From Adineta vaga (Eukaryota > Animalia > Rotifera): a DNA stretch of 64,000 bases. Position numbers and translations under genes: made by a program. The notes below the pieces were generated by a model. It was not told the DNA's origin. It was given only the letters and a program-made list of their open reading frames with translations, and searched no databases. Every line of letters starts with the position of its first letter. The stretch's first letter is position 1. Positions 1,317 to 30,600 of the stretch are shown here, one piece after another. Location of the stretch: positions 10,230,001-10,294,000 of the forward strand of contig CP075494.1 in the NCBI GenBank assembly GCA_021613535.1, given 5' to 3'.

Positions 1317-1626
1317 CTCTACTTCGTTCAATGTTTCGATAAACCCTACTGGGTCAAAATTCTTGTACTTTTGATTATACTCACGGATCCAAAATTGCGA
1401 TCATTCTAACATTCTAACTCTTCTAAAACTCAAACTTATTCATTTTCATAAAAATTTCCACAATATGATAGTCTTTGGTTTCTTGTGCCCGTAATCCGTG
1501 TATAATATGCGTAGTATTTGGAATCCTATTCGAAGTTCGAGTATCAGAAGAGGACTACATGTAATTCTAACTATATTCGACAAATACTAAATTTGATGAT
1601 GTTCGTAAAGTGAATTTGTACGTTAG

Positions 1627-4600: not shown

Positions 4601-6662
4601 AACTTCTGTCGGCGCATGCATCGTCATCAAATGGGGTGATGATCATCTTGTTGCTTATGTCCAAAGCTCTGATATTACTGAAGAACAGCTACGCGAACAT
4701 TGTCAATCATATCTTCCACCACATATGATTCCATCGATGTTCATCATACTTGATAAACTTCCACTCAATGCAAATGGAAAAGTAGATAGAAAACAACTTC
4801 CGCTACCCAATGTATCATCCCTGAGCATGCTATCACCAGATGATTCTGATGTTCCACATAGTGAGTTAGAACAAAGTGTGCACGACATCTGGATTCGTGT
4901 TTTACGAAGTAATGAAAAGCAGATTTCTACAAGTACGAATTTTTTCAGTATTGGTGGTCATTCACTTTTGTTTATTGAACTTTATCATCGTTATCAATCA
5001 TTTTTTGGCTTCAATAGTCATGAAGTGTCTATTGGTTCATTTCTCCAACAACCAACTATTTTCCAGCATGCACAATTACTTTGTTGCATCCCGATGAACG
5101 ATTCGGAATCTACACAATGGCATACGTTGCATATACAGCAAGGTATTGAACTTAATATGAATTACTGAGATATAAATAGTGTAATGGTCTTTCTGAATTT
5201 GCAGGTATTGCGTCTTTTGCTCAAGAACGAATTTTTCTCGATGAAAAGGTTCGATTCTCTAATCAAATTGCTATATACAATGAATTGGCTGCTCTGCGAG
5301 TTATTCAAGGTTCATTGTCAGTAGATCGTCTAACACAAGCTTGTCGATATGTCCTTGGCAAACATAAGATACTACGCACATCTCTAAGTTTCAATGAGAA
5401 TGATGGAATTTTGATACAATACATTACTGACAAACATAGAACATTTACAATAGTTACAAATCAAACATTTGAGAATGAGAATGAAGTTCAGAATATTTTT
5501 TATCGTGCGACAATCGATCCTGATCTATTCGATCTATCAACTGGTCGTGTTTTTCATTGTCAAATAATTTGGCAACAGAACTCAATCGATATAAATGAGA
5601 ACAGTGAACTTATTAAAGACAATGATGTGCTCATTATCGGCTTTCATCATGCAGCAAGCGATCGATCATCTCGTCCAGTATTTTACAGCGATCTATATCA
5701 TGCTTATAATAACAATTCAATATGGTTCGACGAAGAGAAATCATTGCAATACATTGATTATAGTGTTCATGAACGTCTAATCGATATGACACCATCACGC
5801 GAGTTTTGGCGTTCTCAACTAGCTGGCTACCATGTTGAGCATCACTTAGCGTTGCCTGTTGATCGACGTCGTTCGCCCAGTGAACAACGATCTGGTGCAA
5901 GTTCTATTGCTCAGATATCATTGGACAATGATGTTTCAACCGCATTCTTGGAATATGCTTCATCACATCAAGTGACACCATTTCAACTAGGTCTTGCTAC
6001 ATTCTATGCATTTTTGTTCAAGTTAACACATGGTGACAATGATATATGTGTTTCGACCCTAAATGCTAACCGATACAGACCTGAGTTGCAGAATATGGTC
6101 GGAATGTTTGTTACAACATTACCACATCGAATTCAACTTGACCAACAGTGGACTTTTCATGAACTTGTTGAAATTGTGCACGATAAATGCTTATCGATTC
6201 TTGAACACTCTTATTATCCTTTGCAGCAAATTATAACTGACATGCGTCTGAATCAATCAACTGTTCCATTTCTTGAAACGTTGTTTGACTTTGCTACTGG
6301 AACCTCGGATAGCAATCGGACATGTTTACAAGCAGCAACTTTGGAATCTATGCCAGTAGAACAATCTACTCATGTTGCTAAATTTGATGTCAAGTTTTCG
6401 TTTGTCTATGACCCATGGTTAAAAGATAATAAGTTATCATTTAATTTAAATTGTTCAAGTGATTTGTTTCACGGGACAACGGTTCTGACGATGGCTCGAA
6501 GATTCAATCATTTTCTTCATCAAATTTTTTCAACAAATCTAAATGACTCTCAAGTCGACACTCATACTCGAACTTTGAATAAGTGTAATATTATTCTACC
6601 AGAAGAAGATTTAGAAATTCAAAAGCAAGGCTTCTGTCGACAATTAACTGATACAAAGGAAG
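1627..6662 (+). CDS. NRPS unit 1 (C-A-T-C), with two 1-bp frameshifting deletions relative to its duplicate
   Basis: Acceptor ttag at 1623-1626. C motif HHALFDF, A core motifs, T FSIGGHSLL, second-C exon 5205-6662 (HHAASDR). One base is missing at about 2273 and at about 4300 compared with unit 2. Confidence 0.85.
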
Positions 6663-9600
6663 GTATGTTGATATTTCAAGAGAAAGCTGCTAGCATGTGA
6701 GAGATTGAATCGATAAAAGCTTGAAAATCTCTCCTGCTTGGAAAAATCGCTTTATTGCTGAAAAGAATTCGTTATAGTACAATGATAAACTTCGCATTCT
6801 TGACTAACTTTTTGCATTGTGAGATCTTAGCGAAAGCATGGGACGTCGCCCAAGAAGTTTTTATTGTTATAACCGGGTAATGGGTTCCTTTTGCGCGTAT
6901 ACTGTCGCTTTCGTTCACATCTATCACTGTTATACGCTCTGTAAAAGCTTATTATCGCCAGCCTTAACGAAGATATTCTGAACAAAAAATTAACAGAAAA
7001 AGGACGCGGATAAAAGTGAAGGTGTAGCAAAAGGAGGAACACGTATTATTATGATTTGAACACTCTTTGCATCTACTCTTACGCCTACTCCAGCAGCTTT
7101 TATACCCATTGATTATGGTTGATCTTTGTTTTTCGATCCTTGAAATACGAAAGATCAAAGGACTTTGATATCGCTCGAGAAAAGCTGATCTGGATAAGAT
7201 AGATCTCAGTTACCTCTAAATCTATACGCTTGCTTTTGCTCCTATTCACCTGCATCCAAACTCTCGTATCGAAGATGAAGATTTGTTTTTATAGATCATT
7301 CTCTTTCTCGTACAGAAGAGTCTTGCAAGAAAAAACTGTTTGCTTACTTGCTTGTTTGTCTGTGCGCACTTCACTGATTGGTACAAAATCAATGTAAAAA
7401 TAAAAAGAATTATTTTCGATAAAACCTGAACGAAGGTTAATCAACATCAGAGATGAACACGGCGCAACATGTTATGTCCTCCTCTGTTCTGATGAACGAC
7501 AGAACAAAACAAAAATCGAAAGCACTTCCTGTATAGAGGGCAGGACAACACAGTAAAAGCTCGAATGTGAAAATCGTCCGGACCGACATAAACATCCAGT
7601 TTAGCGGGGCAATCGTTACAGAGAAAGTTCAACTAGTATTTGCACTTTACAGTTACTTTTCAAAAATAACAATTTTTTACTCGATTAAAAAAACATTATT
7701 TCATACGTTTGAAGCAACTGTAAAGTACTACTCCTGGGTTCAACAAAAACAAATCCACCCATCCTTTTGCATTATTGTCTACGTTTTTTAGTTAGATTTT
7801 ATTACTTTATTCAATGAAGTATAATCGATTGCGACTAAACATTTATCAATACAACAGATACAAATGATAAATAAAGATTCTCTTAAATATGTTGCGAATA
7901 ATCATTTCTTCTTTTAAGAATATCAGGTATATTTGCTATTGAAACACAAAACTTATCTTTCAATTTTCGAAAAGATAAACTGCGGTCACTGTCTCTTGAT
8001 AAATCAACCTTTTACTCCGAATGCATATTATGCCTAGACGTCATATTGAGACAAGTATCTTTCATTCTTTATGTCGATCTTGATCGAATATAACTTTACC
8101 ATCAGTAAAATTCAGAACATTGACTTTCACAATATCGGCTATATATTTAGATGTGTGTTTCGGTGAGGATGACGAGATAAGCAGACGATTAGACGATGGT
8201 ATGAGTGTTTGCTAGCGTAACAAAATGACGGATTCGCAGAGTAGAGTTCTAACGATGAATACATAGCTACAGTTCATCTATGCGACCTGTTCACCGGGCA
8301 CTATCTTAGCTTTCTTTGTTTTCTGATGGATGATCACTCCTATAGGAGTTGTGCTAAATAAAGAAAAAACACGATTGTGAGTATACAGATGAAACAATAC
8401 ATCATCATATCGAAAGACCAAGGGAGAAAAGCGGATCATGTGGATCCTTTTGTATTCGGCAGATACGCTTGGATCCTATATATTCTATGAATTCTACCGG
8501 ATCATTTTGGGTCGTATGGATTCTCTTTGATTTTATCGGATTCTCCTTGATCTTGAGAAAGGGATAAGGCATATCCTAGGATATAACAGAAACCGATAGG
8601 ATTCAACAGAATCTGATAGGATCCAACAGAATCCATAGAGTTCGCTTTTCCCCCCTTGTGATAAATTGATTGAGCTGTCATAAACTCTTTTTGAACGTTT
8701 ACTGTTCTCCACTTATTTTTTTCAGTGCTAGTGGTCTTTTTATACACCCCTAACTTCTTTACCTCAAGTTCGGTTAAATTGTTACTGTTCTCATTATTCT
8801 AATAATTATAAATTCAAGAGTATGTTAGAATTATAATACTTCTCAATTTTACTCGCTCCGACTCTAGGGTATTTTTGAATTCTTTTCAAATTCAAAATGA
8901 AAAAAAAAGAACGATATTTTTTCACACAACCCAGGGTATACGGACTAAACAAAAAAAACGTTTTTATTCAATAAAGACAGTCAATCTTATATTCACTTGG
9001 CATCACTAACCGTTTTTATCGTTCTCTCACGATTTCAACCCTCTCATCAGACACTGACCAGACATACTTACACTACTATCATCATAGAATCAACACAGTC
9101 ATTTATTAATATATGGAAATATAGATAGACATCAATGTATACTTTCATATATCCTTAATTCTGAAAAGGTTGGGTGTACGGTCTGAGAATATACAGATCT
9201 TCACATGCTCTTAAAAGTTTCTATACTGCATAACAAATAAAGAGCTGAACATCGGTAGACCTAGCCTCGTCCAGATCAAGGATACATGGAAGTATACATG
9301 TATGTATAGTTTTGTATATTTATGTATGAACAATTATAAAGACCCAGATACCCATGATTTCAGTCGGAAATGGGGTCATTTTTTTTCTTTTAAATCCAGA
9401 AAGAATTCAACTAGACCATTCTATGCTTATTCCGAGATTCAGATTGTCATAGAAGTCCGATTATTCTAGAACTCTTATTTAGGGATGACACTTTAACTTT
9501 TTTTAGAGGTTAAAGTAACTACTTTAACGGGAAAATGACGTTTCATACCACTTTGTTTTTCCGAACTGCGTGACGAAAAAAAATGATAGAAATCTTATCA

Positions 9601-12600
9601 TGGAATCCGTGAAGCGAAAGTTGAAGTAAGTAAACAGCATTTTTCGAACGAATGGATGTATAAAATAAGTACTTATATCAATTGGCGGTGCCTGAGCCCA
9701 CCCAGTCTTACTTGTGGGTGAATTTGGCCCTCGTTGGCCCACTCTGGACAACATGTCTGCTCACATCCACATCCTCTCGGCAAGAAATTTCCGAACATCC
9801 GATAAAAATTCCCGGATATCCGACATCCCCGAACATCTGCACGAAATCAGCAAAAAATAGTTTTCTTTTCAAACACCCGGACACGTTACCCGATGTTCAG
9901 AATGGATGGTACGAAACGTAGTTTTCACCCACTTTAACTTTAAAATCATAGCAAAATAAAACTATTTTGAATTTTAGAATCGTATTAAAGTTAAAATATT
10001 TTGAAGTGACTTAGTATCATTTGCAACTGAGCAACGAACACATTTTAAATACTATAAAGAAATTTTTAATGTTAAAGCTAAAATGAAACTTTAATCACTT
10101 TTTCAAAGTAAAGTTAAAGTTAAAGTGTCACCTCTACTCTACTTCGTTCAATGTTTCGATAAACCCTACTGGGTCAAAATTCTTGTACTTTTGATTATAC
10201 TCACGGATCCAAAATTGCGATCATTCTAACATTCTAACTCTTCTAAAACTCAAACTTATTCATTTTCATAAAAATTTCCACAATATGATAGTCTTTGGTT
10301 TCTTGTGCCCGTAATCCGTGTATAATATGCGTAGTATTTGGAATCCTATTCGAAGTTCGAGTATCAGAAGAGGACTACATGTAATTCTAACTATATTCGA
10401 CAAATACTAAATTTGATGATGTTCGTAAAGTGAATTTGTACGTTAGCACCAGCGTCCTATGCGCAAGCTCGCATTTGGCTCGATGAACGGATTCGATTCG
10501 ACCCTGACAAACCACAACTCGCAATATACAACATGCCTTTTCTCTATCGCCTCTCCTCCGGATATACTCTATCAATATCACAACTTCGCCATGCTCTTCA
10601 ACTCATTGTGCAGAAACATCTATCACTACGAACATCACTCAACTTCGATTCAGAAAACAATGTACTCATGCAACGAATTGTTGATTTAGACAACGATAAT
10701 AAAGATCAACTATATGAATTCATCGAAAGTACCTATGAAACAGAGGAAGAACTCAGTCACATTATGCACACTGAGAAAGGCAATCCACATATCTTTGATC
10801 TTTCTCGAGGTCTTGTCTTTCGATGCCATCTCGTCTACTACAAACGAATATGCACAATTGATCTTCTTTCCGACAAAGATGCGATCATTTTCAATTTTCA
10901 TCATGCTTTGTTCGACTTTCCATCAATGAGCATATTTCTTCATGATCTCAATCAAGCATACACAACCAGTCAACTACCTCCTGATAATGATGATACTCTT
11001 CGTTATCTTGATTGTAACTATCTACATATATTGTCTTTTAATACCATGTTATTTGACTCTTCATTCTCTTTTTTAGATGCTACTATTGAACAAAAGATGC
11101 CGATGACAGGTGCAAGCATGTTTTGGCTTGATGCGCTACATGATTGCCAACTCGATCGACCACTACCGTTACCATATGATCGACATCGTCTTTCAGATGA
11201 GCATCGAACTGGTCGTGGAACATCTGTTTCTTTCGATTTTGATCGGGATCTTTCACATCACTTCCTTACTTACTCATCTTCAAATGCCATCGGTCTTGAA
11301 CATCTCGCACTTGCACTATACTACGCCTTTCTATTCAAACTAACAAACGGAGAAACAGATTTATGCATCGGAAAGAACACAGATGGTCGATACAGAGAAG
11401 AGCTTAAGTCAGTCATTGGAATGTTTGTAAATGCTATCCCATTACGATGTCAAGTGGATCCTCATTGGTCTTCGCAACAGTTAGTCATGCATGTTAATGA
11501 AATAATGACTAATAGTATGAAATACTCGTATTTTCCTCTTCAACGTATTCTCTCTCAACATCCGCATGTTGCTAATCCTGCATTTCTCGATGCATCTTTT
11601 GGTTATTTTATGCTGGACAATGAAAATAAAAAGAGTGAAATCATGATTGGTGGTTTTCATCTTCACGGTATGCGTTCCTCACTTAAGATTAGCGAAGAAG
11701 AAATAACGAGTAAGTTCGACTTCTTCTTCAATATTCAACATAATATTGTCACAAATCAACTATCATGCATAATCAATGGATCGCTTGATCTATTCGATAC
11801 AGCAACAGTTGATATGATTGTGCAAAGATTCCATTTGTTTGCACAACATTTTTTTAAATCTGTCGATAATCGAATGAGTAGGCCAATTCATGAGCTATCA
11901 ATGATATTACCAAATGAGAACATGGTTATGCAATCTTTGAATAATACGAAAGTGTCATTTCCTTCTGCCACGTGCATTCACCATGAATTTGTTGCTCAAG
12001 TAATACAACATCCACAAAAAATAGCCGTTGAACTTGACGATCAATCTCTCACATTTGCGGAGCTTCTGCATCAAGCTCAAGCATTAACTCTGCATCTTCT
12101 CATACATCACGATGTTCTCCCAGGGGAAATTATCTGTCAATGTGTGGAGCGTAGTTTATCAATGGTAAACACAATTAAATGATTGTTTCATGATTATCCT
12201 ATAAATAACTCATTTTCTCTAGGTTATTGGCATTTTAGCGATCGTCATGGTTGGTGGTTCATATTGTCCATTATCACCACAAGATCCTCCGCAACGTCTG
12301 AAAGCTCTTGTCAACCAAATTCATAGTCGTTTGGTTATCATTCATCCTACCACAACTGCTATGTTCGAATTGAACACAATGACAGTTAATATTGATACAG
12401 CTATGCATTTCAATGAATCGTGTAACGAAGCAAAGGTTCAGCAACTTTCAGACATACCTATCACAGCAGAAAATATTGTCTTTACAATTTTTACTAGTGG
12501 TTCAACTGGTATTCCAAAAGCGGTTTGTATAGTGTCTGAATTCATATTTATCTAATAAATGTCTGTTTCTTTTCTAGGTTCAAGTGCGTCATCGAAACTT

Positions 12601-15600
12601 CACTGACTTTATGCACTCGTTTGTTTTTACTGGTGTACTCGGAAAGAGCGATGTAATAATACAAATGGCACGTTGCTCTTTCGATAATCATCTTTTAAGT
12701 CTCGTTGGTACATTGATGACTGGAGCAACATTAGTAATGCTTCGACCGCAAGGCAACATGGACTTAGAATATCTCACTAGAGTGCTTGATAAAAAGCAGA
12801 TTAGTGTTATGCACGCGGTTCCGTCTTTGTTGAATAGTCTTTTTCATTTTCTTAAAGAAACTGAGCGTACGTTAGCTGTGAAATGGTTACGATCGTTGTG
12901 TAGTGGAGGTTTGTAGTTTTTTTTAACGATTATTGGAGTATTATAGATTTCTTTTTATTATTTTGTTACAGGTGAAGCTCTCAATGTCAAGACAGCTACC
13001 CTATTAAAAAGTGTAGTTTCAGAGACGTGTCAAGTTCGAAATCACTATGGTCCAGCCGAAGTCACTGTGAACTGTGCTTGTCATCTAATTGATCTGACTA
13101 AAGATCAAGAAAGCATTCCTCTCGGTCGACCTCTACCTAATTATCGATGTTTGATTCTGGACGAGTACTTGCAGACTGTCTATATTGGACTTGTAGGAGA
13201 ACTTGTTGTTGGAGGAGTTGGCATTTTCGCAGGATATCTTGCTCGTGCTGATTTAACGAGAGCAGTATTAATTAAAATGAATGATGAGATTTTCTACAAA
13301 ACAGGTGATCTTGTTCGAATGGACGAAGATGGGTTGATTCATTATGAAACTCGTAAAGATTATCAAGTGAAATTACGAGGTCAGCGTATTGAACTGAGTG
13401 AAATAGAACAGTGCCTATTGCAAACTTCTGTCGGCGCATGCATCGTCATCAAATGGGGTGATGATCATCTTGTTGCTTATGTCCAAAGCTCTGATATTAC
13501 TGAAGAACAGCTACGCGAACATTGTCAATCATATCTTCCACCACATATGATTCCATCGATGTTCATCATACTTGATAAACTTCCACTCAATGCAAATGGA
13601 AAAGTAGATAGAAAACAACTTCCTCTGCCCGAATTTTCTCATCTATCATCAGCACATTTGGGTGAAGATGGTAAACCAGCAACACCAAGAAATGAAACTG
13701 AACGCATCATTCATCACATTTGGTGTGATATACTAAAGAGAAATGAGATCTCAATCGATACAAGCATCTTCAGTATTGGTGGCCATTCATTACTCATCAT
13801 GCAACTCTTTCATCGATACAAGACAGAACTTCATCTAGAAGAAAACATCCTCTCCATTGCTGATCTCTTTCAACATTCATCCATCTCAGATCATGCAAGG
13901 CTCATTCAAGAGACATTAAGCATCATACGAACCGATGATGAGCATCAATGGTATCCACTGTATCTCACTCAAGGTAATATACATGTTACATACCTATGCA
14001 AAACTATATTTCTCTCTATATCTCTCTATGTACAGCGAGAGCATCATTTGCGCAACAACGCATCTTTCTCGATGAAGAACTTCGTTTTGCATCTCGAACT
14101 AGCAAAAACATCTATGCCATTCCACATATCTACCGCCCTATGTCAAACAGTGATCATATTTCCATCTCAAGATTCCATCGAGCACTTCATGCTGTCATCA
14201 CAAAACATAGCATCCTTCGAACTGCACTCTATCTCGATATAGATGGTTCAATTGTACAAGAATGGTTAAAGGCAAACATCTCTTCTATCGACGGGTCGCA
14301 ACCATATGGTTTCACGATCATCAGTCTGCAGAACGATGACTGTGGTAACAATGAAATTTTCAGAGAGATTCAAAATCAATCTGATCTTTTCGATTTGCCA
14401 CGAGGACGTGTCCTTCATTGTCACATTCTTCGTTATTCACACATCGATGAAGATCTATTGACTGATCGTGACTTCATACTAATCAACATTCATCATGCAG
14501 CGTTTGATGGTGCATCCACGTCCACTTTTCTCTCTGATCTTGCTCTTGCCTATGAGAATATTCAATCGCTAGAGAGAGATGAAGATACATTACAATACAT
14601 GGATTATTCTGTTCATGAACAAGTCATGGATATGACACCAGCTCATGACTTCTGGCATTCTCATCTCGAAGGATACAATCTTCAGCATCCTCTCGCCCTA
14701 CCCATGGATCGGCAACGTCCATCCACTACTCAACGATCAGGTCTTGCATCCAGTAGTCACTTCGTGTTCGAGAATGATGTTGCTGCAGCATTTCTTAACT
14801 ATGCATCATCACATCATCTCACACTCTTTCAACTCGGCTTGGCAACATTCTATGCATTTCTCTTCAAACTGACGCATGGTCAAGATGACTTATGTGTTGC
14901 ATCGATTAATGCGAATCGATATCGAAGTGAACTAGTGAACATGATTGGAATGTTTGTTTCGACACTGCCATATCGTGTTCAACTGGATGCTCATTGGTCA
15001 TTTGACGAACTTGTTCGACATGTGCGAGAGAAGTGCCTATCTATTCTTGAAAATTCTCACTATCCACTGCAGCAAATCTTGGCTGATTTTCATCTGAATC
15101 AATCGAATGCTTCATTTCTTGAGACAATGTTCGATTTCATCACGATACAAAATAGTTTACAGCATCTCTCTTTTATGGATGCACGCTTAGAGCAAGTGTT
15201 TTTGAAAGATTTTCAGGGAACGAGAAAGTTCGATTTCTCACTTACATTCGTGTTGAATTCATCTTTAAATAATGACCGACTGGTGTGTAGTTTGACATGT
15301 TCACAAGATTCATTTGGAAAAGCAACTGTTCCAACACTTGGCCGAAGATTTCAGTACCTATTCCAACAACTTTTTGGAAGAAGCTCCTACACGAATTTGA
15401 CGAGTGAAATGAACACATCAATTAGCGAACTTTCTTTTGTTTTTCCAGAAGAGAAAAGGGAAATGGAAGATATCCGTTTTTGCCGACAACCGGACGCTAA
15501 GATTGAAGGTACATTTAGTTTGTCAGAGTCATGCAATTTGAAAAGTTTGAAATCTGAAGGGTGAATCTTTCTATGCTAGACGTCTGCAGACCAGGGCTTC

Positions 15601-18600
15601 TAAACCTCCTGATTTCATTAGGAGTCTTCTGGTTTTTTACCTTTTCTCCCGATTTAAAATCTCCTGAAATCAGGAGCTGATTTTCATCATTTTCTCCTGA
15701 TTTTTGCTTTCCCTTAGTCGAGATTTACAGACACCTTCTCGTTCGTACAAATTTGGTGGAGAAAACGAGAAAATAATCAGAATTCAATAGATTTTTATTA
15801 ACTATTTCTGTGTCGAATGCTTTTTCTAAATCAGTTTTTAGATACATGATGTTTTTTTTGACAACAATCAGAAACAAGATGACACATGATTTAGCTGAAG
15901 TAGAATTCTAAACTATATGAACACCCATTTGACATCTACAGTTTTATTTTTATGTGTTTACTAAATCGAATATACTCAGAGAAATCCGATCGTCAGAGAA
16001 ATATAGTTTCATTAAAAAAGCCACCAATTTAATAGTAAATATTTAATTACATACTTTCTGCCTCATGTTTTTGTTTTATATTAATCGAGAAGTTAATATT
16101 CATTTGCTAATAATTGGCCATAAAATAAATATAGAAATAAATTTTGTGAAATGAGCATTTCTTTCAGTTTCCTTTATTTATATGGAATTCTTTTATAGTT
16201 GCTTTGTAATGGAAGAGAGACACGTCTGTAAAGGTATACAGTAGAACCTCTAATAGTAGACACTCCTATATAGTGGACATATTGAGGCCCGACGGACCGC
16301 TTTTTGCTGCAATTGAACTTCTACATAGTGGATACTCTCTATAGTGGACATTTGAATACAATTATATACGATGAAGATTTCTGAAAAGTGTATTGGTGCT
16401 CATAAAAGAAATTCGACTAGACTTTTGACAACTATGAAGTTATGGAGACCAAAGATACATGTAAGAACAACTAACAATACACAGTAGCATCTTGTATTGT
16501 TTACTAGGAACCCTTAGGTATCTACAAAATATATTTACTTTGTTTGAAAGAGTTGTTCTATAAAATACCTCACCTCTATATAGTGGACACCTCTTTACAG
16601 TGGACAGTTTTGAATGGTCCCGAGAGTGTCCACTATAGAGAGGTTTTACTGTAGGTATAAACTAAGGCAAAAGTTAAATATTATTCTGATTCTTATAGAA
16701 AAGGATCTTTGTAAGAATAAATTATTTGTTTAGTGGTCGCATTTCCCTGATTGATCGGAAGATATATAAAAACAAAAAAGACAATTTAACCTAATACTTG
16801 ACTAAAGGGTAATAGAAGATAGAAAATATGGATTTGACAATAGTTTGAAAAGAATAGGTCCTATTCTTTTGGATAAAAAAATCTTTCCTTTTACAAAAAA
16901 ATAATCATTTTTGGTAAGGATTCACCGACGAATAGTTGGAGTCTTGGACCTCAAATATAAGGTCAATTTTTTGCAAACTAGATGAATAAAAAGTTCAGTA
17001 ACAGTGAAAAACATAGATTTTACCAGGGGCACTTGAGCGTGTTTTTAGATGAGCGTAATCAGTGTTTTATCCAGTTTTTTGCTCCGAAGCGGCAAAATCA
17101 ACTTTCGAGAGGATAGGGGAACATTTTCAAAGGAGACATTATCTGAATATTATCTAGTATATAACATTCATACTTTTATAAGATAAAATTTGTCAATTGT
17201 GTAAGGATCAATTTTTCCATTTCATTTATTCAAAAGATGCGCGCAAAATGTACGAAAAAGAAACAAATAAGTAATAAATACACGAGAAAAAACTTCGTAC
17301 CAACAAGCGACAAGAAAAACCAAGAAAAACATCAATATAACATAAATTTACTTCATGTTACTCAAACTGCTAAACGACGTGGTTTGACATTTTTCCAATG
17401 ATTGATAATTTCTTTTTTCATCTCTTCATTTAAAACTTCTTCGCCTTCAATTGAAATTCTTATTAATTGATCAAGATGTTCAATTATTAATCGATTTCTC
17501 AATTTTGTAAGAACTCGATTCATTGTAAAAAAATCTCTTTCAACAGCCGCTGTACTAATTGGTGCAATCAGGAATATTTCTGCCGCTAATGATAGTTGTG
17601 GATAAATATTTTTCAGCATGCTATCTTTGACAAGCTTAACACACACTTCTCTTTGAGATATAAGTTTACCTGTTTTCTTTTGAGTTAACAGATATGTTCG
17701 AAAAGTTTTCCATTCATATATAACTGATTCGTTAAAGTCACTTGAGTAGTGCGTCTTGATTTCATGAATTTCTTCATCACCATAATCATTACTACCATTT
17801 AAATGTTTCATATCAAATATCATAAAACAATGTAGTAAATTGAGGGTTTCTTGATTAAAGGAGCTTTTATATTATCAGTAATATTATTAATAAATGGAAG
17901 AATTTTTAATTTAAGAAAACATGATCAGTATTTGAATTCATACTAAGTGTTGATGATCTAGAGCTTCGAATTGTTGAAGATGTTAATGATAATTTTTCAA
18001 TTGTTCCAATAACATTTACATAATCACTAGAATTATAATCTTCAAGTTCTTCTAGTCGAAGCATGGTGGATGATACAAAATTCTGTAATTGTTTGAAATC
18101 AGCTGCTCTTGTTTGAATAGATTTTGCAAGAACAGCTAACGTATCTAAAATTGGTTGCAGAGAATGAAGGATAAATGCAGTTGTTTGATTTGATAAAATG
18201 TTGTGAAGAGCCAAAGCTTCTGCACTATCATCATTGTATCCATTATAAATATGTTCGAGTGTTGACAATAAAGATTGATATGAATGTAGAAGAGATCGAA
18301 TAGCTAACGAAATTGAGAGCCAACGAGTATCACCGGGATGAATTAGTTTAATATGTTGATTCCTAAAAATATCTTGAATGTCTTCGAATAAAGTTAATCT
18401 TACCGAAGATCGATTTATGGAATTAACTAATGGTCTAAGTGTTGATAAAAATTTACAAATATCCGGAATGTCATCTGCAGCAGATATCACAGCTAACTGT
18501 AAAGCATGAGCATAACAATGAATAAATAATATCGCAAGATTAAATGCATCACAAAATCTAGCAGCAACGCCATTATGAATCCCACTAAAAACTGCAACAC

Positions 18601-21600
18601 CATCAAATGCGACGAAACCAACTTTCTTCAAATCAATATTTTCCTTTTGAAAATCCGTAACAATATAATTAAAAATAGACTCTGCGTCCTTTTTTTAAAA
18701 TGTATTAAACTCACGTATGTTTCGAATGGCTCACCGGTTTTAAAATCACAGTATCGAACACAAATGCATAAATTCCCATGTCTAATAATATCAGTTCCTT
18801 CATCAGACATAATGCTAATAACTCTTGCTTGTTGAATTTTCTTGAGAACATTTTTATCTAATACTTCACTAGTAACTTCAAGAAAATCGGTGATTGTTGT
18901 TGTACTGTTGCAAGTAGCATTTTTATCACATTTTTCTAAAAATTCGATTAACTTTGAACTATGACCTATACGACTGATCAGTTATAATAATGGAGCATAG
19001 AGTGTTGTATGTGGTAATTCGTTTTTAAATAAAAAATAACAACAATCAAGTTAATCTTTTAATCGATGTCTGTTTTCTTTTCTTTCTGCCTCACTTACCA
19101 CGACTAACTGATTGAAGATGGAACCTTCCTGTTCACAAAACGTGTTATTTTCAAGTGCCATCTGATGATATTCTGATCGTGAATGTTTCATTAGTCGTCC
19201 AGTACCTCCAGTTGTTTTTTTTCCAGTTAGTAAATGGTGTTGATATAAATACTCCTTTTGTTTTTTGTTCCATATCTCGGAATAATGGTACACCCGGTTT
19301 CCAATAATCTCGACAAAAGCGACAGAATCCATCTGTATTTGGTTGATAAGTAAGCCATGGAAGTTTCTATGAATACGACGGAATGTATTGCCGTTTTTGC
19401 TTTTTATTTGTGAGATTCGATGATGTCGACGCTGAATCTATAAAAAAAAGAATTATTATTGAAGAACTCAGTTCTATTGACACTGATCTCAAAAATTTAA
19501 TTACCAATGTGACTTGTTGATATGTTCTTATCAGCACTATGGCTGACTCTACCTACATGAATATTTGATTGTTTAGTAGCATTCTCATTTTCACTACGAT
19601 GTCTTTTTTTTGTGGCATCACCTTCGTCATTTTGTTTTCTTTTCACGAAATATTTATCGAGAGAACCTTGCTTCGACATTTTTAAATAATCTTACAATGA
19701 TGATGTGTTCGAAAGATGAGATAAGAAAAAATATATTAATATAATAACACTTATATTGCGAATGATAATATTCAAAAGAACATTTTAATTTCGAATGAAA
19801 CATCAAAGTAACAGATTAATCGAACATATATATTACAAAATAATTACAATACAATTCTTAATTAAATTACATAGATACAAATCTCTGTATGCGTGACATA
19901 GTTTATTATATAAGGGATCATCTAATTAATTGAACTCAGCATTCACATGTGAAAAATTAAGAAATTACGATAGTTTAACTCATTGACATTAGGAATACAG
20001 AAAACAACAAGCTGAATCTAACTAAAAGCTAATAATACATAACGATTAAATTATATTAGAAAAGGAGTTTATTTTACCTTAAAAATATAATATTAATCAG
20101 CAAATTTTTCGAAGATCTCTCACAAAGATAGTTTTTAGAAAATAGTACACTTTTAAATTTCAATAAATTTTTTACTCCGGCGAGGCAAACACGAGCTCCG
20201 AGAGGGCAAATGTCCTGATGCCCCCCCCCCCTCCCCCGCTGGATAAATCACTCAGCGTAACTTGCACAGTAAAAGTTATATAGACGTTCTTGAATATCTA
20301 AAGAGAACTTCCTGATTTCTCAGAAAACTTCTCCTGATAAACTCCTGATTTTTTCATAAATCCCTGATTTCTAAAACTTTCATTTGGCAAGCCTGACTGG
20401 AATCTGTTCCCTAGAGCAAAGATTCAGTACCCCATAAAATTCTGGTGCCGCCGTTACTGTGACTCTCTATCAAACTTGCCTATATTTACACTATCCTTCT
20501 TATGTAGCACCAGCCTCCTATGCTCAAGCTCGTATCTGGCTCGACGAACGAGTTCGATTCGATCCGGACAAACCAGAAGTGGCTATCTACAACATGCCTT
20601 TCGTTTACCATCTCCATTCAGGCCATACTTTATCAATACAACAACTTCATCATGCTCTTCAACTCACAATCAATAAACATCCATCACTTCATACATCACT
20701 TACATTTGATACAGATAAAAATTTACTCGTCCAACGAGTCATCGATTTTAATAGCACCAATAATAGTAGTAGTAGTAGCAGCAGTAGTATTAATCATAGC
20801 CCACTGTACACTTTCATTGAAACCGTTTATGAGTCAGAAGAACAACTCAATGGCATTATGTATGAAGAAAAACGAAATCCTCAACTCTTTAATCTTGCTC
20901 AAGGACTCGTCTTCCGATGTCATCTTCTTCACTATAAACAAATCTCATCAAACGGTCTGCTATCCGAAAAAGATGTGATTATTTTCAATTTTCATCATGC
21001 TTTGTTCGATTTCCCATCTATGAATGTGTTTCTTCGTGATCTTAATCAAGCATACACAGCTGGCCAACTAACTGACAACGATGACACCAGTTTACGATAT
21101 TTGGATTGTAAGTAGAGTTACTTTCGTCCCATTATAATCCACTACTCTTGTCTGTTATTCAGATGCAATCATAGAACAACAAATGCCAATGACTGACGCA
21201 AGTATGTTTTGGCTCGATGCTCTTCATAATTGTAAACTGGATCAATCTTTACCATTGCCATATGATCGACATCGTCTTTCGAATGAGCATCGAACCGGTC
21301 GTGGAACATCTATCACTTTTGAATTTGGTCAAGATCTTTCAGATTGCTTTCTCAACTATGCACTGTTGGACAACATAAGTCTTAAGCAATTGGCATTGGC
21401 TACATATTACATCTTTTTATTCAAACTAACAAACGGGGAAACAGATCTTTGTGTTGGAATGAACACACCTGGCCGCTATAGAGATGAACTCAATTCAGTG
21501 ATAGGAATGTTTGTCAATGCTATTCCACTTCGTTGTCAACTTGATCCAAAAGTGTCTTTTCAACAGTTATTGGAAGGCGTCGTAGAAGTAATAACTAATT

Positions 21601-24600
21601 GTACAAAATACTCATATTTTCCTCTCCAACGTATTCTTGCTCAGCATCCCAATGTAGTCAGACCCGCATTTCTTGATATTTCATTCGATTTTCTCTCATA
21701 TATGATGAAAGAGCAGAAGACTAAAATAACCATTGGCTCCACTTCTCTTTCTACTGTACCTTTCTCAATCAAGATTAATGAAGATGAGATAATGAGCAAA
21801 TTCGATTTTGTGCTTAGTATTGAACATGATTTGAAAAAAAATAGCTTTTTCTGCACTATCAACGCATCGCTTGATTTATTCAAAGTCGAAACAGTTAGTG
21901 TGATGGCACAGCGATTTCTCACGATTTTGGATCAACTATTTTTATTAAATGGTTGTCAGACAAATAAATCAATGTGTGAAATATCAGTTGCACTACCAAA
22001 TGAAAGATTACTTATTCAATCAATCAATAATACACAATTGTCGTATTCAGAAACTCCTTGTATCTCTCATGCGTTTGTGAGCCAAACAATGAAACATCCT
22101 CAGAAACTCGCAGTTGAACTCGATGATCAATCACTCACATATGCTGAGTTATTACATTATGTTCAAATACTATCTTTGCATCTTCTCAATATATATCATA
22201 TCGTTCCAGGTGACATCATTTGCCAATGCGTTGAGAGAAGTTTAGCAATGGTGAGTTCATTTGATACCATAAGGATGTTAACTATAGATTTTGTTGATTA
22301 TCAGGTTATTGGTGTTATGGCGATTGAAATGATTGGTGGTGTCTATTGTCCATTATCACCTCGAGATCCAGAGCAACGATTACATGCATTAGTAGAACAG
22401 ACTCACAGTCGTCTTGTTCTTGTCCATCATATGACAAAATTGAAATTCCACAATGGTATTACTACATTTGATATCGATTTTCTCACAAATGAAAATAATC
22501 ATTCTACTAATGTTGACAGCTATCAACTGTCAAACGTGAGAGTTTTACCTGAAGGTATAGCTTATATCATCTTCACTAGCGGTTCAACCGGAATGCCTAA
22601 AGCAGTTAGTAGTCTAGCAAATCATCCTTGGATATTTTGTAAATCTCCTCTTATTTCTAGGTTCAAGTTAAGCAACAAAGCTTTTGTCAGCTTATGTTAT
22701 CCTTAGTTTATAGTGATGTATTGAGTAAGAGAGATACAATTGTACAGATGGCTCGCTGCTCGTTCGATGGTCATATCCAAGATATAATAGGTACACTCGT
22801 TGTCGGCGCAACGCTCGTTATGCTACATCCACAAGGCATTATGGATTTCGAATATCTTGCTACTGTCATGAAACAGAAGAATATTACTTGTATCACCACC
22901 GTACCCACTGTGCTCTACAGTTTTCTCGGGTTTCTTCGACAGGTGAACTATCTTGAAGCAATTAAATTTCTTCGGTCAATTTGTACTGGTGGTACGTGGA
23001 ATTTTGAGAATATGTGTTACTCGACGTACTACTTTTATTTCATTTGTAGGCGAAGCTTCCTCCTCAACGTTGGTAAAGCAGTTTCGAACTATTGTGACAC
23101 AATCTTGCCGATTATGGAATTTATATGGTCCTGCTGAAACAACGATTGAGTGCACATTTCAACTTGTAGATGTCTCAAAGAATAGCGAAAGCATTCCAAT
23201 CGGGAAACCATTATCAAATTATCGATGTCTGGTTTTAGATCAGCGCTTACAATCTGTTATTGTCTCGCAGGAAGGTGAGCTGCTTGTTGGAGGAGCAGGC
23301 GTCTACGCTGGCTATCTTGGACGTAACGATTTAACAGCGAAAGTACTCATCAATATTGATGGTCAGACTTACTACCGAACAGGTGATCTTGTTCGAATGG
23401 ACAGCAATGGACTTCTCCATTATATTGGTAGAAAAGATTTTCAAATCAAACTCCGTGGCCAACGTATTGAAATCGGTGAAATTGAACGATGTTTACTCAA
23501 TACATCTATATCTGCTTGTGTTGTTATCAAGTGGGGAGAAGATCATCTAGTTGCTTATGTTCAAAGTTCTCATACTACCGAAGAACAACTACGTGAACAT
23601 TGTCAATCGCATCTACCACCACATATGGTTCCATCCATGTTCATCATACTTGACAAACTTCCTCTCAATGCTAATGGAAAAGTCGATCGAAAACAACTTC
23701 CTTCGCCAGAATTTTCGAATTTAACCGCTTTATCACAAGACGAATCTGATAATCCACTGAATCACTTGGAACAACAAGTATATGATATCTGGTGTCAAGT
23801 TCTTCATTTTAAAGGAAGTCATTTATCTAAAACTATCAACTTCTTTAGTGTGGGTGGTCATTCACTACTTTTCATCGAATTGTATCATCGCTACCAAACC
23901 ACGTTGCAGTTTGATATCCATTCTCTGTCAATTGCTCCTTTTCTTGAACAACCGACTATAGTTCAACACGCAAGCTTACTGGAAAAAGTCACAATGAATG
24001 AGTTGAAGTCAGCACAATGGCATACACTCCATCTGATAAAAGGTAAGCTATTTTCATCTCATACCATATTCTTTGAAAAACTAATGTGGTTTATACATAA
24101 ATTTGTAGGTAACGCATCTTTTGCTCAAGAACGCATTTTTCTGGACGAGCGAGTTCGGTTTTCAAAGAAAGTCGCTATCTATAATGAACTGATTGTCTTA
24201 AGACTTGCTGATGGTACCTTGCCAGTGAATCGTCTAAGAGATGCTTTCCGATATCTGTTAAGTAAACATGCTGTATTGCGAACATCTATTGTTTTCGACA
24301 ACGAAACCGGTTATGTTCATCAATATATCAATGACAATATTCAAAACTACGCATCAGTTAACAAACACACATTTGAGAGTGATCATCAACTCAACGACAT
24401 CATACATCTGCTATTAATTGATCCTCATCTCTTCGATTTATCCACTGGACGTGTCTTTAGCTGTCAACTATTTTATCGACAATCATCTAACAGCGAAGAA
24501 AGAAATACTGATTTCATCGAAGAATCTGATGTTCTCATATTTGCTTTTCATCATGCAGCCTTTGATCGGACATCTCGCTCGATATTTTTCAAGGATCTGT

Positions 24601-27600
24601 ATCATGCTTATAATAATAATTCAATATGGTTCGACGAAGAGAAATCATTGCAATACATTGATTACAGCGTTCATGAACGTCTAATTGATATGACACCATC
24701 ACGCGAGTTTTGGCGTTCTCAACTAGCTGGCTACCATGTCGAGCATAGCTTAGCGTTACCTGTTGATCGACGTCGTTCGCTCAGTGAACAACGATCGGGT
24801 GCAAGCTGTGTCGTTCAAACATCCTTCGACAAAGAAATTTCTGCATCATTCTTGGAATATGCTTCATCACATCAAGTGACACCATTTCAACTAGGTCTTG
24901 CTACATTCTATGCATTTTTGTTCAAGTTAACACATGGTGACAATGATATATGTGTTTCTGCTCTGAATGCTAATAGATACAGACCGGAATTGCAGAACAT
25001 TATGGGCATGTTTGTTGCAACATTACCACATCGAATTCATCTTGACAAGCAGTTGACCTTTCACGAACTTGTTAGAGTTGTGCACGAAACATGTTTAGCG
25101 ATTCTTGAGCATTCTTATTATCCTCTGCAACAAATTCTAACTGATCGGCGTCTGAATCAATCTCCTGTTTCATTTCTTGACATAATGTTTGAGTTCGTTA
25201 CTGGGTTTTCTGGGGAGGGTCGAAACTTCTCGAACAGTTTGTACTTGGAAAACGTATCATTAGATCAACCACTCCAAATAGCTAAGTTCGATGTCATGCT
25301 TTGGTTTAGCTATAATCCATCATTAAACGATGAGAAGTTATCCTTCAGTTTGATTTGTTCAAGTGATTTGTTTGAGGTGTCAACGGTCAGAATGATAGCT
25401 CGAAGATTTAATCATTTTCTTCATCAGATTTTTTTAACAAATCCAATTGTCGATCAAGCAGATGCTCATGCTCGTTCTCTCACTAAATATAATCTTATTC
25501 TACCAGAAGAAGATTTAGAAATTCAAAAACAAGTATTCTGTCGACAATTAACTGTTATAAATGAAGGTACGTTAATTTAAAATGTGTGAAATCTACTAGT
25601 ATTAAAGAGAATTGAGTCGATAATAGTTTGGAAATCTGTTTTAATTAGAAAAAATCTGATTGTTTTCCATACATGAACTTTTGTTAGTGATTATGGAAAT
25701 GAAAGAAAAATCACTATTTCACATTTCTTAGATTTATGGGATCTTGAACAATAATCTGAATGCACTGATTTATTATATAGGTTATAATGTTTGTTACTTT
25801 CTGTTAAAATTTTATGCATATTAAGTATAATTCTACACGAATCACTATACTCTATTACTAATGAAGACATGACAAATTTGCAGTACTACAGTTGCGTGAG
25901 TTTTGTAGCATTTTATTCCCATGCCGTCCAGTGTCACGGTGACTTGTTTTATCTGAACATCGAAGCATTCTTTTTGTTCGACTACATGTTTTACTTTGAC
26001 AAAGATATTGGAATAGTGAAGGACATCAACATGTTGTAATGCAAATGAATTTTGTCTGATTGAACTATTAATGATTATGACTAAATACATTTTGATATCG
26101 CGATATAAACCAGTGACAGAAATATTTCAAAATAAATCACATCTACAGCCCAATAAAATACTGTAAGACGCAGCTTTGTTCCAAATACTTTAAAAGAAAT
26201 AATGCTTTTTTAGAAATATTAAATAATTTTTACATACGATGGAATCCACGGAAGATTGCACTGTAGTCTTCTATGAAATAGTTAAGATTTCTGATGAAAA
26301 ATAGAGAAAGCCGTGTGTCATAATTAGTCAGTCTCACATATTCGATGGTCGATCTATTTTTACTATTGCTGTTCCGATATATTCCTGATGGTGATTCTAC
26401 CGCACTCTGTAGTCTGAAGACATACCATAATAATTCTCAAACAATTATTCTTTTTCTAACATAGCACCTGCTTCTTATGCACAAACTCGACTTTCGTATG
26501 ATGAGAAAACACCTTTTCATCCAGATCAGTCTTCGACAATCAATTACAACATGCCATTTCTTTATCAGCTATTACCAAAACACACTTTATCTATCAAGCG
26601 ACTTCGGCAAGCTCTAGAACTGTTGGTCATCAAACACGAATCATTCCGAACTTCTCTCATTCTCCCCCAAGAAACCAATATACTCATACAAAAAATCGTA
26701 GATCCTGCTTACGATAAGTCTGATCTGTTTAAGTTTCTCGAGAGTACATATGAAACGATCGAACAATTGAACGACATCATTACTAGTGAAAAGGAAAACT
26801 CGAAATGTTTTGATTTACCTCAAGGCCTCGTGTTTCGATGTCATCTCATTTACTACAAACATATCTCTGATAACGATATTCTTTCTGGTAGCGATCGAAT
26901 TATTTTCAACTTCCACCATGCTGTATTCGATATTCCATCAATGAATATTTTTCTTCGTGATCTCAATGAAGTATACACGATAGGTCAACTACCGAACGAT
27001 GACAATGATAGGTTGCGTTATATCGATTGTAAGCATACATGGATTGTATCGACCCATTTAATGTTATTTTTCTTTGTTTATATTTAGATACTATAATCGA
27101 ACAGCAAATGCCAATGACTGGTGCAAATATGTTTTGGCTGGATGCTCTGCAGGATTGTCATCTCGATCGATCTCAGCCACTACCATATGATCGACACCGT
27201 CTTTCCAACGAGAATCGAACTGGCCACAGCATTTCGACATCTTTTGATTTCGGTCATGATCTCTCCTATGAATTTCTCGCTTATACATCGTCTCACAATA
27301 TTTCACTCCGGCAACTGACACTTACTGTCTATTATGCTTTTCTATACAAATTGACGAATGAAGAGACAGACATTTGTGTTGTGATGAACGTTAACAATCG
27401 ATACAGAGATGAACTCAAATCAATCATTGGATTGTTTGAGAATATCATTCCATTGCGTTGTCAAGTTGATCCTCACTGGTCTTTTCACCAATTAATTCAA
27501 CATGTTTGCGAAATAGAGGAAAGTTGCGTCAAGTATTCGTATCTTCCCTTTCAACGCATTGTCAATCAACATGCAAATCCTACAGGAACTGCATTTCTAA

Positions 27601-30600
27601 ATATCTTTTTTCATTTTCAATCAAGTGAAAGTCAACATAATCAGACTAAAGTGATGATAGGAGACGCTAGACTCTATCGTTTATCTGACCCGGTCGAGAA
27701 AACTAATCATGATATGATAAATCAGTTTGATTTCTTAGTTTTCATCGAACACAACGCAAGTGATAATCGACTATCATGCACAATCAAGGCGTCACTCGAT
27801 TTGTTCAGTGAAAATACGGTTTCTACGATTGCACATCGATTCCATTGCATGATACAAAGTATGGTTCACCCGACAAATGATCAAATGACAACACCAATCT
27901 ACGAATTATCATTCAGATCACCGAATGACGAATTGTTAATGCAATCAGTGAATAACACAGAAATGAAGAATTCATCTGTTTCCTGTATTCATCATGAGTT
28001 TGTCCGTCAGGTGATCGCACATCCACAGAAACTAGCAGTTGAACTTGACGAACAGTCTCTCACGTATTCAGAATTGTTACATTCAGTTCAAGTTTTGTCT
28101 CTACGTCTTCTGAACGAATATCGCGTTGTTCCAAACGAAATCATCTGCCAGTGTCTTGAGAGAAGTCTTGCGATGGTAAGTTGATGAAAGGTATTAACCA
28201 TAGTCTTAGTGAAATATTGATATTGATTAGGTCATTGGTATGATGGCAATTGAGATGATCGGTGGTGTATATTGTCCTCTATCACCTCGAGATCCGGAAC
28301 AACGTTTGTATGCACTTGTACAACAGACGAATAGTCGTCTTGTACTGGTGCATAGTTCAACAATAAACAAGTTTCCCCTTTCTTTCATTATACTAGATAT
28401 TGATATTCTAACGATTCGTGTAGATCTCGAAGATGTTTCTAGTATTGTTCAACTATCAAATATTATAGTCACGCCAGATAATATTGCCTATATTATTTTT
28501 ACCAGTGGATCAACTGGGATACCGAAAGCTGTGAGTGATGTCTTCAACGATGAAGTGACAAAGCAGTAATATCCATTTCTTTTATAGGCACAAATTCAAC
28601 ACCGAAACGTGAGCGCGTGTATGCATTCTATGGTGACAATTGATGCTGTCAATCAATACGATATGGTCATACAAATTGCACGTTGTTCATTTGATGTTCA
28701 TGTTCTAGACATAATGGGAACATTGATGATTGGTGGATCTTTGATAATGCTACATCCTGACGGTATTCTAGACCTTGAATATTTCACATCAGTGCTGCAA
28801 GAAAAACAAATCACTTATATTCAAGCAGTTCCGAGTTTGCTTAAAGCATTCTTTACATTTCTGAAAGAAACATTTCAATACTCTCAAGCAAAATGTTTTA
28901 GATCTGTCTGTAGTAGTGGTTAGTGGTTATAAATCACATTTTTATCTCAATAATCTCTCTTTCTTTTCGTAGGAGAACCTTTCTCACTCGACTTAATGTC
29001 GTTAATAAACAGTTACGTCACAAGCAAATGTAATATATGGAATTTGTACGGTCCCGCTGAGACAATAATTTGTACATTTCAATGTGTCAATTGGTCAGAG
29101 GATATAATAAAAATTCCAATCGGCTTGCGTATGCCTGACTATCAATGTCTGATATTAGACAAATTCTTACAAAAACTTACGCTAGATCAGGAGGGTGAAT
29201 TATTTGTAGGAGGATTAGGGGTCTTCGCTGGCTATCTTGCACAAGATGATTTGACAACGAAAGTACTCACTAATATTGAAGGTGCGAATTTCTATCGCAC
29301 AGGTGATCTTGTTCGAATGGACAGCAATGGACTTCTCCATTACATTGGAAGAAAAGACTTTCAAATCAAACTTCGTGGTCAACGTATCGAAATCGGTGAA
29401 ATTGAACAGTGTTTGTTGCAAACTTCCATCGACGCATGCATCGTCATCAAATGGGGAGAAGATCACCTAGTTGCTTATGTTCAAAGTTCTCATATTACCG
29501 AAGAACAACTACGTGAACATTGTCAATCGCATCTCCCACCACATATGATTCCATCGATGTTCATCATACTTGACAAACTTCCTCTCAATCCAAATGGAAA
29601 AGTAGATAGAAAACAACTTCCTCTGCCCGAATTTTCTCATCTATCATCAGCACATTTGGGTGAAGATGGTAAACCAACAACACCAAGAAATGAAACTGAA
29701 CGCATCATTCATCACATTTGGTGTGATATACTAAAGAGAAATGAGATCTCAATCGATACAAGCATCTTCAGTATTGGTGGCCATTCATTACTCATCATGC
29801 AACTCTTTCATCGATACAAGATAGAACTTCATCTAGAAGAAAACATCCTCTCCATTGCTGATCTCTTTCAACATTCATCCATCTCAGATCATGCAAGACT
29901 CATTCAAGAGACATTATGCATCCTAAGAACGGACGACGAGCATCACTGGTATCCACTATATCTCAGTCAAGGTAAAATACATGTTACATACCTTTGAACA
30001 ACTATATTTCTCTCTATTCGTTTATTTATAGCTAAAGCATCATCTGCTCAAGAGCGCATCTTTCTCGATGAACAGATTCGTTTCTCATCCGCAATCAGCC
30101 AAAACATCTATGCCATCCCACATATCTACCGCATTTCACCACACAATGATGAGCTTTCAATCTCACGGCTTCTTCGTGCTCTCCATGCTGTCGTCACAAA
30201 GCATAACATCCTTCGAACTGCACTCTATCTCGATACAGAAGGTTCTATTGTACAACAATGCTTAGAGTCGAATATCTCGTCTATCGATGGACCAGGACCA
30301 TATGGTTTCACGATCATCAATCTTCAGAATGATGATCGTCAAATCAATGAAACTGTGAGAGAGATTCAAAATCAACCTGATCTAGTTGATTTGTCACAAG
30401 GACGTGTTCTTCATTGTCACATTCTTCGCCAGTCGCGCCTCGATGAAGATCTACTCACTGATCGTGACTTCATACTAATCAATATCCATCATGCAGCATT
30501 TGATGGTGCATCCACATCCACTTTTCTCTCTGATCTTGCTCTTGCCTATGAGAATAGCCAATCGCTACTGAGAGATAAAAGTACATTACAATACATTGAC

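Follow-up and report, generated by a model that had tools for sequence, protein, structure and literature searches.

The stretch of DNA analysed here (the window: 64,000 nt of Adineta vaga, C5:10230001-10294000, about 35% GC, with short GT-AG introns) holds the 3′ third of an approximately 84-kb array of nonribosomal peptide synthetase (NRPS) modules; the 70 kb upstream of the window were covered as well. On the evidence of sequence comparisons, the four units of the window and the rest of the array would probably constitute one very large intron-bearing NRPS gene. In this gene, the shared phase of the introns in front of the condensation (C) domains would be inherited, and the long gaps separating the units would be inflated forms of a single junction intron. 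The long junctions would still be spliced in cis, giving, as we infer, one mRNA of about 19,000 codons.

On the + strand of the window, Pfam searches of stop-free pieces reveal four units. Three have the order C-A-T-C and the last one has the order C-A-T-C-A-T, followed by a 640-aa tail (A, adenylation; T, carrier). The Pfam families AMP-binding, AMP-binding_C, PP-binding and Condensation are found on exon pieces of every unit, in the order of a modular (type I) NRPS, and the proteins that match the exons best are gene models from Adineta. Two clades, C1 and C2, can be told apart among the C domains, with an identity of about 36-40% between them. A carrier domain always precedes C2, the two being separated by a short intron. 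C1 always precedes an A domain and, in the array, follows C2. According to a tblastn domain map and to Pfam, the array starts near C5:10181243. From 5′ to 3′, a repeat-rich carrier region and a C2 are followed, across a junction, by C1-A-T-C-A-T-C2, whose second A has a weak nitroreductase-like match. Then come C1-A-T-C2, C1-A-T-C2-A-T-C2, five C1-A-T-C2 and the terminal unit. The grammar is thus (C1-A-T-C2)n, with C1-A-T-C2-A-T-NRPS_term at the end, and the whole amounts to 21 C domains and 9 C2/C1 junctions. The locus would most likely encode an assembly line of 12 adenylation modules with spliced module boundaries, and with two condensation-type domains between consecutive carriers.

At the start of the array, C5:10181243-10182865 is a 541-aa open stretch with about three tandem repeats of 369 nt (visible as repeated antisense open reading frames, ORFs) and one weak PP-binding match; no A domain was found within 21 kb upstream of it. 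Further on, C5:10187006-10192711 is a single intron-free exon of 1902 aa, reading A(end)-T-C-A-T, with a weak nitroreductase-like match inside A.

The predicted exons and introns of the window, with one transposon remnant, are the following (^ marks the splice site).

1..1626, + strand: 3′ part of a C2/C1 junction intron (copy B), a 3.8-kb intron starting upstream of the window; the acceptor TAG^ ends at 1626.
1627..5142, + strand: C1-A-T exons of unit 1 and their short introns (tblastn domain map; HHxxxD present), lacking 1 nt at 2271 and 1 nt at 4300 that copies A and C have.
5143..5204, + strand: T/C2 intron, 62 nt, phase 1, AAG^GTATTG ... TTTGCAG^.
5205..6662, + strand: post-T C2 exon of unit 1, 1458 nt, phase 1 at both ends (Pfam Condensation E=3.6e-52; HHAASD).
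6663..10446, + strand: C2/C1 junction intron, 3784 nt, phase 1, donor GAAG^GTATGT, acceptor GTTAG^, with old dispersed-repeat fragments.
10447..13973, + strand: C1-A-T exons of unit 2 (Pfam; exon limits from A. steineri proteins by tblastn).
Acceptor ending at 11076, + strand: C1-internal intron of unit 2 (best candidate), in frame, stop-free.
12165-12222 (phase 0), 12523-12577 (phase 0) and 12909-12971 (phase 1), + strand: further best-candidate introns of unit 2 (GT-AG candidates).
13974..14035, + strand: T/C2 intron, 62 nt, phase 1.
14036..15508, + strand: post-T C2 exon of unit 2, 1473 nt (Pfam E=1.2e-47); up to 15143 within the 88.7% tract common to unit 4.
15509..20507, + strand: C2/C1 junction intron, 4999 nt, with nested transposable elements and dispersed-repeat matches.
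17365..17823, - strand: hAT transposase remnant, dimerisation domain (Pfam PF05699 E=1.4e-07), inside the 5-kb intron.
20508..24042, + strand: C1-A-T exons of unit 3, with a C1-internal intron at 21108-21162, phase 1 (Pfam, domain map, GT-AG candidates).
24043..24108, + strand: T/C2 intron, 66 nt, phase 1, in frame and stop-free.
24109..25566, + strand: post-T C2 exon of unit 3, 1458 nt (Pfam E=1.2e-46).
25567..26464, + strand: C2/C1 junction intron, 898 nt, donor GAAG^GTACGT, acceptor CATAG^, no repeat matches.
26465..29971, + strand: C1-A-T exons of unit 4 (domain map).
29972..30031, + strand: T/C2 intron, 60 nt, phase 1.
30032..35223, + strand: gene end, with C2 running directly into A, then T and an NRPS_term-like tail with hexapeptide repeat (Pfam); stop at 35221-35223.
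Near 31700-31739 and 32037-32088, + strand: two short introns of the terminal part.

The initial annotation had stated that every C domain of the window begins after a phase-1 intron, and this is borne out at all the sites that it named. The seven donors (5143, 6663, 13974, 15509, 24043, 25567 and 29972) read AAG^GTA, and the eight acceptors (ending at 1626, 5204, 10446, 14035, 20507, 24108, 26464 and 30031) read (T/C)AG^. All of them are in phase 1, the upstream exon contributing one G, and the GT...AG boundaries checked at these C-domain starts restore the reading frame. The intron lies one split codon plus one whole codon before the 'AS[YF]AQ' core motif of the Pfam Condensation domain. The four T/C2 introns measure 62, 62, 66 and 60 nt; further short introns within a unit have about 55-65 nt, and the long gaps 3784, 4999 and 898 nt. 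As judged from the best candidates, the intron phases within a unit are 1 at the junction, 1 inside C1, 0 at C/A, 0 and 1 for the first and second introns of A, and 1 at T/C2; hence two of the six intron classes (C/A and first A) are not in phase 1. The three C2 exons of units 1-3 are in phase 1 at both ends, and their lengths (1458, 1473 and 1458 nt) are multiples of 3. The description of post-T C domains as single symmetric exons thus holds for these units and fails for the fourth one (30032 onward), which runs into an A domain. The read-through stops predicted beyond the long-intron donors were found where expected, ending at 6700, 15564 and 25580, that is 14-56 nt past the donors.

As for the T-C-C-A order across the long gaps, sequence comparison lends support to the proposed exon-intron model, on account of the donor, of short versions of the junction, of the lack of a start codon and of the transposon insertions in the 5-kb gap. 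The nine C2 ends of the array all read GAAG^GTA(T/C), and the nine C1 starts all follow (T/C)AG^. More than 60 unspliced homologous ORFs (about 50-60% identity; A. steineri, A. ricciae and rotifer metagenome contigs) read '...NEG[MIT]' and then meet a stop within a few unconserved codons, which argues for a conserved GTATG donor with unconserved sequence after it. In more than 40 A. steineri gene models, the C2 end is spliced to 'NE-A-PAS[YF]AQ'. Two rotifer metagenome contigs (ENA ERZ25071726 and ERZ25067493) keep the C1-A-T-C2 grammar; their donor reads GAAG^GTATGTAA and their acceptor tctgttgtAG^. Splice signals are therefore kept across paralogues and species, and the flanking intron sequence is unalike between junction classes. 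Furthermore, some junctions are short. The first one of the array is a clean GT..AG intron of 159 nt, and its read-through frame has no match to C1. A. steineri loci have C2/C1 junction introns of 137 nt and about 55 nt, and the C2 and C1 matches of an A. vaga paralogue (C5, near 0.69 Mb) are 82 nt apart (raw distance). A terminator and a promoter would not fit into junctions of this size.

The beginnings of the C1 exons were also considered. No in-frame ATG occurs upstream of the C1 acceptors, and models forced to start at C1 have unrelated N-termini (MYFFVIA..., MILA..., MQKAT...); a separate starter-C class has a conserved MF(Q/P)KK... start. The initial annotation had held that its model would fall if each unit possessed its own promoter and first exon. 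Such a hidden exon was searched for by a three-frame scan upstream of four C1 acceptors, and no conserved ATG-led exon was found there. The start 'M-x-x-x-A-PAS' or 'MSVVA' seen in many metagenome ORFs was rejected as a genuine N-terminus: what is conserved there is the acceptor tract tctgttgtAG^, in which an ATG or TTG turns up now and then, and no ATG occurs at this place in two long contigs. Between ERZ25071726 and ERZ25067493, about 100 nt before the acceptor are alike. At the other end of the units, no poly(A) hexamer (AATAAA, ATTAAA) was found within 400 nt past the read-through stops of units 1 and 2, which is weak evidence; three poly(A)-signal hexamers lie within 400 nt past the final stop at 35221-35223.

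The uniform phase can be traced to the way in which the modules multiplied. Positions 1-4811 of the window are 99.8% identical to 8818-13634, the 1.6-kb spacer included (blastn), and 1..1626 is identical to 8818-10446 save for three 1-nt indels. The full 3.8-kb gap (3746-3784 nt) is found in three copies along the array, about 100% identical, and the C2 exon of unit 1 (5205-6662) has a 100% identical copy 8.8 kb upstream. Taken whole, the 8.8-kb units (spacer, C1-A-T and C2) are 99.8-100% identical, spacer included, with a third copy located 8.8 kb before the window. Older units share tracts at 72-89% DNA identity; the C2 of unit 3, for instance, is 80.8% identical to that of unit 1 over 5512-6730. 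Of the array's 21 C domains, 20 have an intron at this position and in this phase, as do A. steineri homologues. The exception lies inside the intron-free 1902-aa exon upstream of the window. The uniformity of phase is thus no product of chance, yet it does not represent eight independent events either. It is inherited, because an intron that is copied along with its module retains both position and phase. Each module would carry copies of two ancestral introns located at one and the same codon. The modules would have multiplied by tandem duplication and would have been kept alike by gene conversion, so that uniformity would result from ancestry, not design.

The ends of the identity tracts bear on the role of the introns in these events. 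The 100% tract begins about 500 nt into the upstream C2 exon (about -11900, where negative positions count back from the start of the window), and its other end, at 4811/13634, falls within the A/T exon. Similarly, the 88.7% tract shared by units 2 and 4 (13206-15143 and 29204-31139) extends from the middle of the A/T exon to the middle of the C2 exon. Since recent identity tracts end inside exons, introns were not the breakpoints, and intron-mediated shuffling is ruled out for the recent events. The exon shuffling through phase-1 introns that had been proposed finds no support in these recombination or conversion tracts.

The content of the long gaps differs from one to the other. In the 5-kb gap, matches to dispersed repeats (75-93% identity) occupy roughly 15590-20396; they begin 26 nt past the read-through stop, end about 110 nt short of the acceptor and leave about 190 nt of the gap outside their span. 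The 3.8-kb gap holds older repeat scraps, pieces of which match many genomic sites at 70-84% identity. The 898-nt gap has no repeat matches; its sole genomic match is a paralogue 54.5 kb upstream, at 91% identity. The long gaps would correspond to the C2/C1 junction intron inflated by transposons and other non-coding DNA, and then propagated by duplication of the units. Within the 5-kb intron, a hAT DNA transposon remnant (17365-18631, - strand, antisense to the NRPS) is nested in another dispersed repeat that fills the intron.

The two condensation types deserve separate consideration. The HHxxxD motif is intact in the eight C domains of the window, as HHALFD or HHAVFD in C1 and as HHAASD or HHAAFD in C2. 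With dN/dS values of 0.12-0.21 for C1 and 0.27-0.52 for C2, both types are under purifying selection, and on both counts they look functional. The nearest PDB sequence matches of both are ordinary condensation domains (Txo1/Txo2, TycC PCP-C). The N-terminus of C2 reads ASFAQERIFLDE, which we take to be the motif of C-type (SxAQxR), not E-type, domains. The possibility that the post-T C2 is an epimerisation (E) domain was ruled out by this N-terminal motif and by the C-domain matches in PDB (Txo1/2, TycC PCP-C, fuscachelin-type PCP-C); no E-domain chain is found among the PDB matches listed for C2. Two condensation-type domains hence stand between consecutive carriers (T-C2-C1-A) at 9 junctions of the array and, as far as sequence can tell, the C2-C1 pair is obligate throughout the A. 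vaga genome. Elsewhere in the gene, a C2-type domain is fused directly to A, as in the C2-A of unit 4, which shares the 88.7% DNA tract with the C2 of unit 2. Because C2 is the same kind of domain as in this C2-A, the doubled junction would probably have arisen by duplication of a C1-A-T-C2 block, with one breakpoint just past C2.

That the array is a single transcription unit seems rather likely, and several observations weigh against it. Genome-wide in A. vaga, the raw C2-to-C1 distance lies between 82 and 9010 nt, its median being about 2.4 kb (n=54 junctions), and gaps of 1.5 kb and 7.9 kb occur in other rotifer contigs. Long C2/C1 gaps beside T/C2 introns of 60-66 nt are an odd asymmetry for one intron class in one transcript. 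Spacers copied with the unit would account for part only of the inflation of this one junction class; gap sizes do recur within arrays, 3784 nt being found three times here, about 3000 nt five times and about 900 nt many times elsewhere. Gene predictors often end their models at C2. A junction-crossing search with a spanning A. steineri model returned predicted genomic models only and no RNA-derived protein, and a protein search with a C1 exon returned exon-sized genomic ORFs only. The Av13 model named as expressed, g56482.t1 of the older assembly, has 3,115 aa only; an exhaustive search of representative proteins with the 1081-aa tail gave no near-identical model. Together with the stops 14-56 nt past the donors, the wide gaps here (0.9-5 kb), in the genome and in other rotifers, so unlike the introns of about 55-66 nt in the same genes, the many annotated models ending at C2 and the 3,115-aa rather than 19,000-aa Av13 model would fit tandem separate genes. 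Each C1-A-T-C2 would then have its own promoter (perhaps with a small 5′ exon in the gap) and a stop past the apparent donor, and the proteins would cooperate in trans like the subunits of split bacterial NRPSs. This is unlikely, because the C1 exons begin in phase 1 without an in-frame ATG, the N-termini of C1-first models are not conserved, the GTATG donor is conserved in more than 60 homologues and the read-through tails are not, the junctions of about 55, 82 (raw), 137 and 159 nt are too short for a terminator and a promoter, and units 1 and 2 lack a poly(A) hexamer past their stops. Decay or mis-assembly of the array may also be envisaged, with pseudo-modules or a repeat expanded by assembly, no single working enzyme and a splice pattern that would be a relic. 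About two and a half copies of the 8.8-kb unit are present (window 1-13634 and C5:10219069-10230000), and three 8.8-kb copies are all but identical to one another. Between copies A, B and C, indels of 1-2 nt occur (at -2008, 822, 1103, 1943-44, 2271, 2728-29 and 4300), some of them frameshifting (2271 and 4300 in unit 1, and two 2-nt deletions, at -6872 and -6088, in the upstream copy). If real, these indels would break the single ORF in units A and B, which counts against one gene. Two frameshifts are also recorded for the locus by Nowell et al. (2024; PMC11258130), and the junction introns are loaded with transposons. However, over 8.8 kb the only substitution is at 2254, within the C1-internal intron. 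This almost indel-only pattern looks less like decay than like residual consensus error of long reads in a repeat beyond the reach of short-read polishing. Moreover, every HHxxxD is intact, dN/dS is below 1 between older units, and the locus is called 'apparently expressed' in PMC11258130. Decay or mis-assembly of the whole array therefore appears quite improbable. The near-identity of the 8.8-kb units would reflect either a long-read assembly error or a very recent duplication, and their copy number may be uncertain.

The other alternative is the one put forward by the initial annotation, in which the common phase would be a device for alternative splicing or exon shuffling. The underlying arithmetic is sound, since any phase-1 donor can join any downstream phase-1 acceptor in frame, and the three C2 exons have the same-phase flanks of cassette exons. 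Gain or loss of the exon as a whole among paralogues, or breakpoints in the flanking introns, the other traits of such exons, are not seen. Skipping of C2, which was expected to yield a canonical T-C-A order, would create a T/C1 junction, and this junction is found at none of the 63 C1-type starts of the A. vaga genome; no carrier lies directly upstream of any of them. For 54 of these starts, the nearest upstream feature is a C2-type end. In two cases the nearest one is a T, at a distance of 2.7 and 7.2 kb, and seven starts have neither T nor a C2 end within 15 kb; the latter are taken to be array starts or to have another C type upstream. As no paralogue has a T/C1 junction, the C2 exon is not an optional cassette at the DNA level. 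Regulated alternative splicing (C2 skipping, module dropping) or alternative polyadenylation in the long introns would derive several assembly lines from one locus. In its favour, joining a C2 donor to a later C1 acceptor would preserve the C2-C1 domain grammar in addition to the frame, the junction introns are unusually long and near-identical modules are consecutive. Against it, the phase is accounted for by ancestry, T/C1 junctions are absent, C2 is under purifying selection, and chance alone would place a stop 14-56 nt into a retained intron in AT-rich DNA of 35% GC, where the stop rate is roughly 7% per codon. The chances of such regulation are thus low. The use of phase as a splicing device is not supported by these comparisons, which point to a by-product of module duplication. 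It would be very improbable, too, that the long junction intron serves as a switch point, where any C2 donor joins a later C1 acceptor, or where transcripts start or end, to give a nested family of shorter assembly lines. If this were true, one 84-kb locus could, for example, make peptides with differing numbers of near-identical modules.

Module duplication with homogenisation is a known route in the evolution of modular NRPS genes, and the single gene proposed here can be compared with known systems. It resembles the canonical (C-A-T)n NRPSs of bacteria and fungi in its A, T and C Pfam signatures and in HHxxxD. It differs from them by T-C2-C1-A at 9 junctions, with neither C being epimerisation-like, and by spliceosomal-type introns interrupting the gene at fixed positions. 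In split bacterial NRPSs, subunits hand over between proteins, for example from a subunit ending in E to one starting with C, with docking or COM elements. There also, a C-superfamily domain ends one coding block and a C starts the next, with a read-through stop soon after the first. In the rotifer, however, the first block ends in a conserved donor, the second has no start codon, and the first domain is C-like, not E-like. Finally, symmetric (1-1) exons and exon shuffling are known from multidomain genes of metazoa. The rotifer array likewise has domain-sized exons between phase-1 introns, the duplication or skipping of which keeps the frame, but its tracts have no breakpoints in introns and the symmetric exon is present at 54 of 54 genomic junctions.

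The locus is already published. In a study of NRPS and polyketide synthase (PKS) clusters that bdelloid rotifers acquired through horizontal transfer (Nowell et al., 2024; PMC11258130), A. vaga cluster 5.7 is this same locus, with the same domains and tail. Coordinates and strand match, the ORF pieces are labelled Condensation_LCL / PCP / AMP-binding with an NRPS_term tail, and the product is estimated at 19,229 aa, cluster lengths being estimated by 'generally assuming' co-translation. The available passages and tables give no account of intron positions or phases, of doubled C domains or of the variable junction intron, and the main text has one occurrence of 'intron' and none of 'splic'. 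Neither the rotifer NRPS papers searched nor a wider phrase search gave any text on intron phase or tandem C domains. Spliced doubled-C junctions and an inflated junction intron would thus not have been described in the rotifer NRPS texts searched, as far as these were accessible.

At the 3′ end of the gene, the tail (33301-35220, 640 aa) resembles a Pls/PosA-type NRPS terminal domain (TIGR02353 E=9.3e-30, below cut-off) and also the hexapeptide repeats of sugar O-acetyltransferases; Pfam finds no thioesterase or reductase release domain at the C-terminus of the synthetase. Directly downstream of the NRPS lies a non-LTR retrotransposon (38255-41316, - strand), with an RVT_1 ORF (E=7e-36) and an upstream ORF encoding an Exo_endo_phos endonuclease. 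Farther on, 57995-59146 (- strand) is a piece of a homologue of CCDC47, a subunit of the PAT complex (Pfam E=9e-63); the NRPS therefore lies among normal animal genes.

RNA-seq of A. vaga has been published for pathogen challenge (a time course of Nowell et al., 2024) and for desiccation, a series that these authors re-analysed; expression of the locus is low. When a modular gene has grown by duplication, its ancestry leads one to expect introns of equal phase, which in themselves are no evidence of programmable splicing. If the long junctions are spliced, the locus would encode an animal protein of about 19,000 residues from about 60 exons, in which each module boundary would be a spliced C-C junction.

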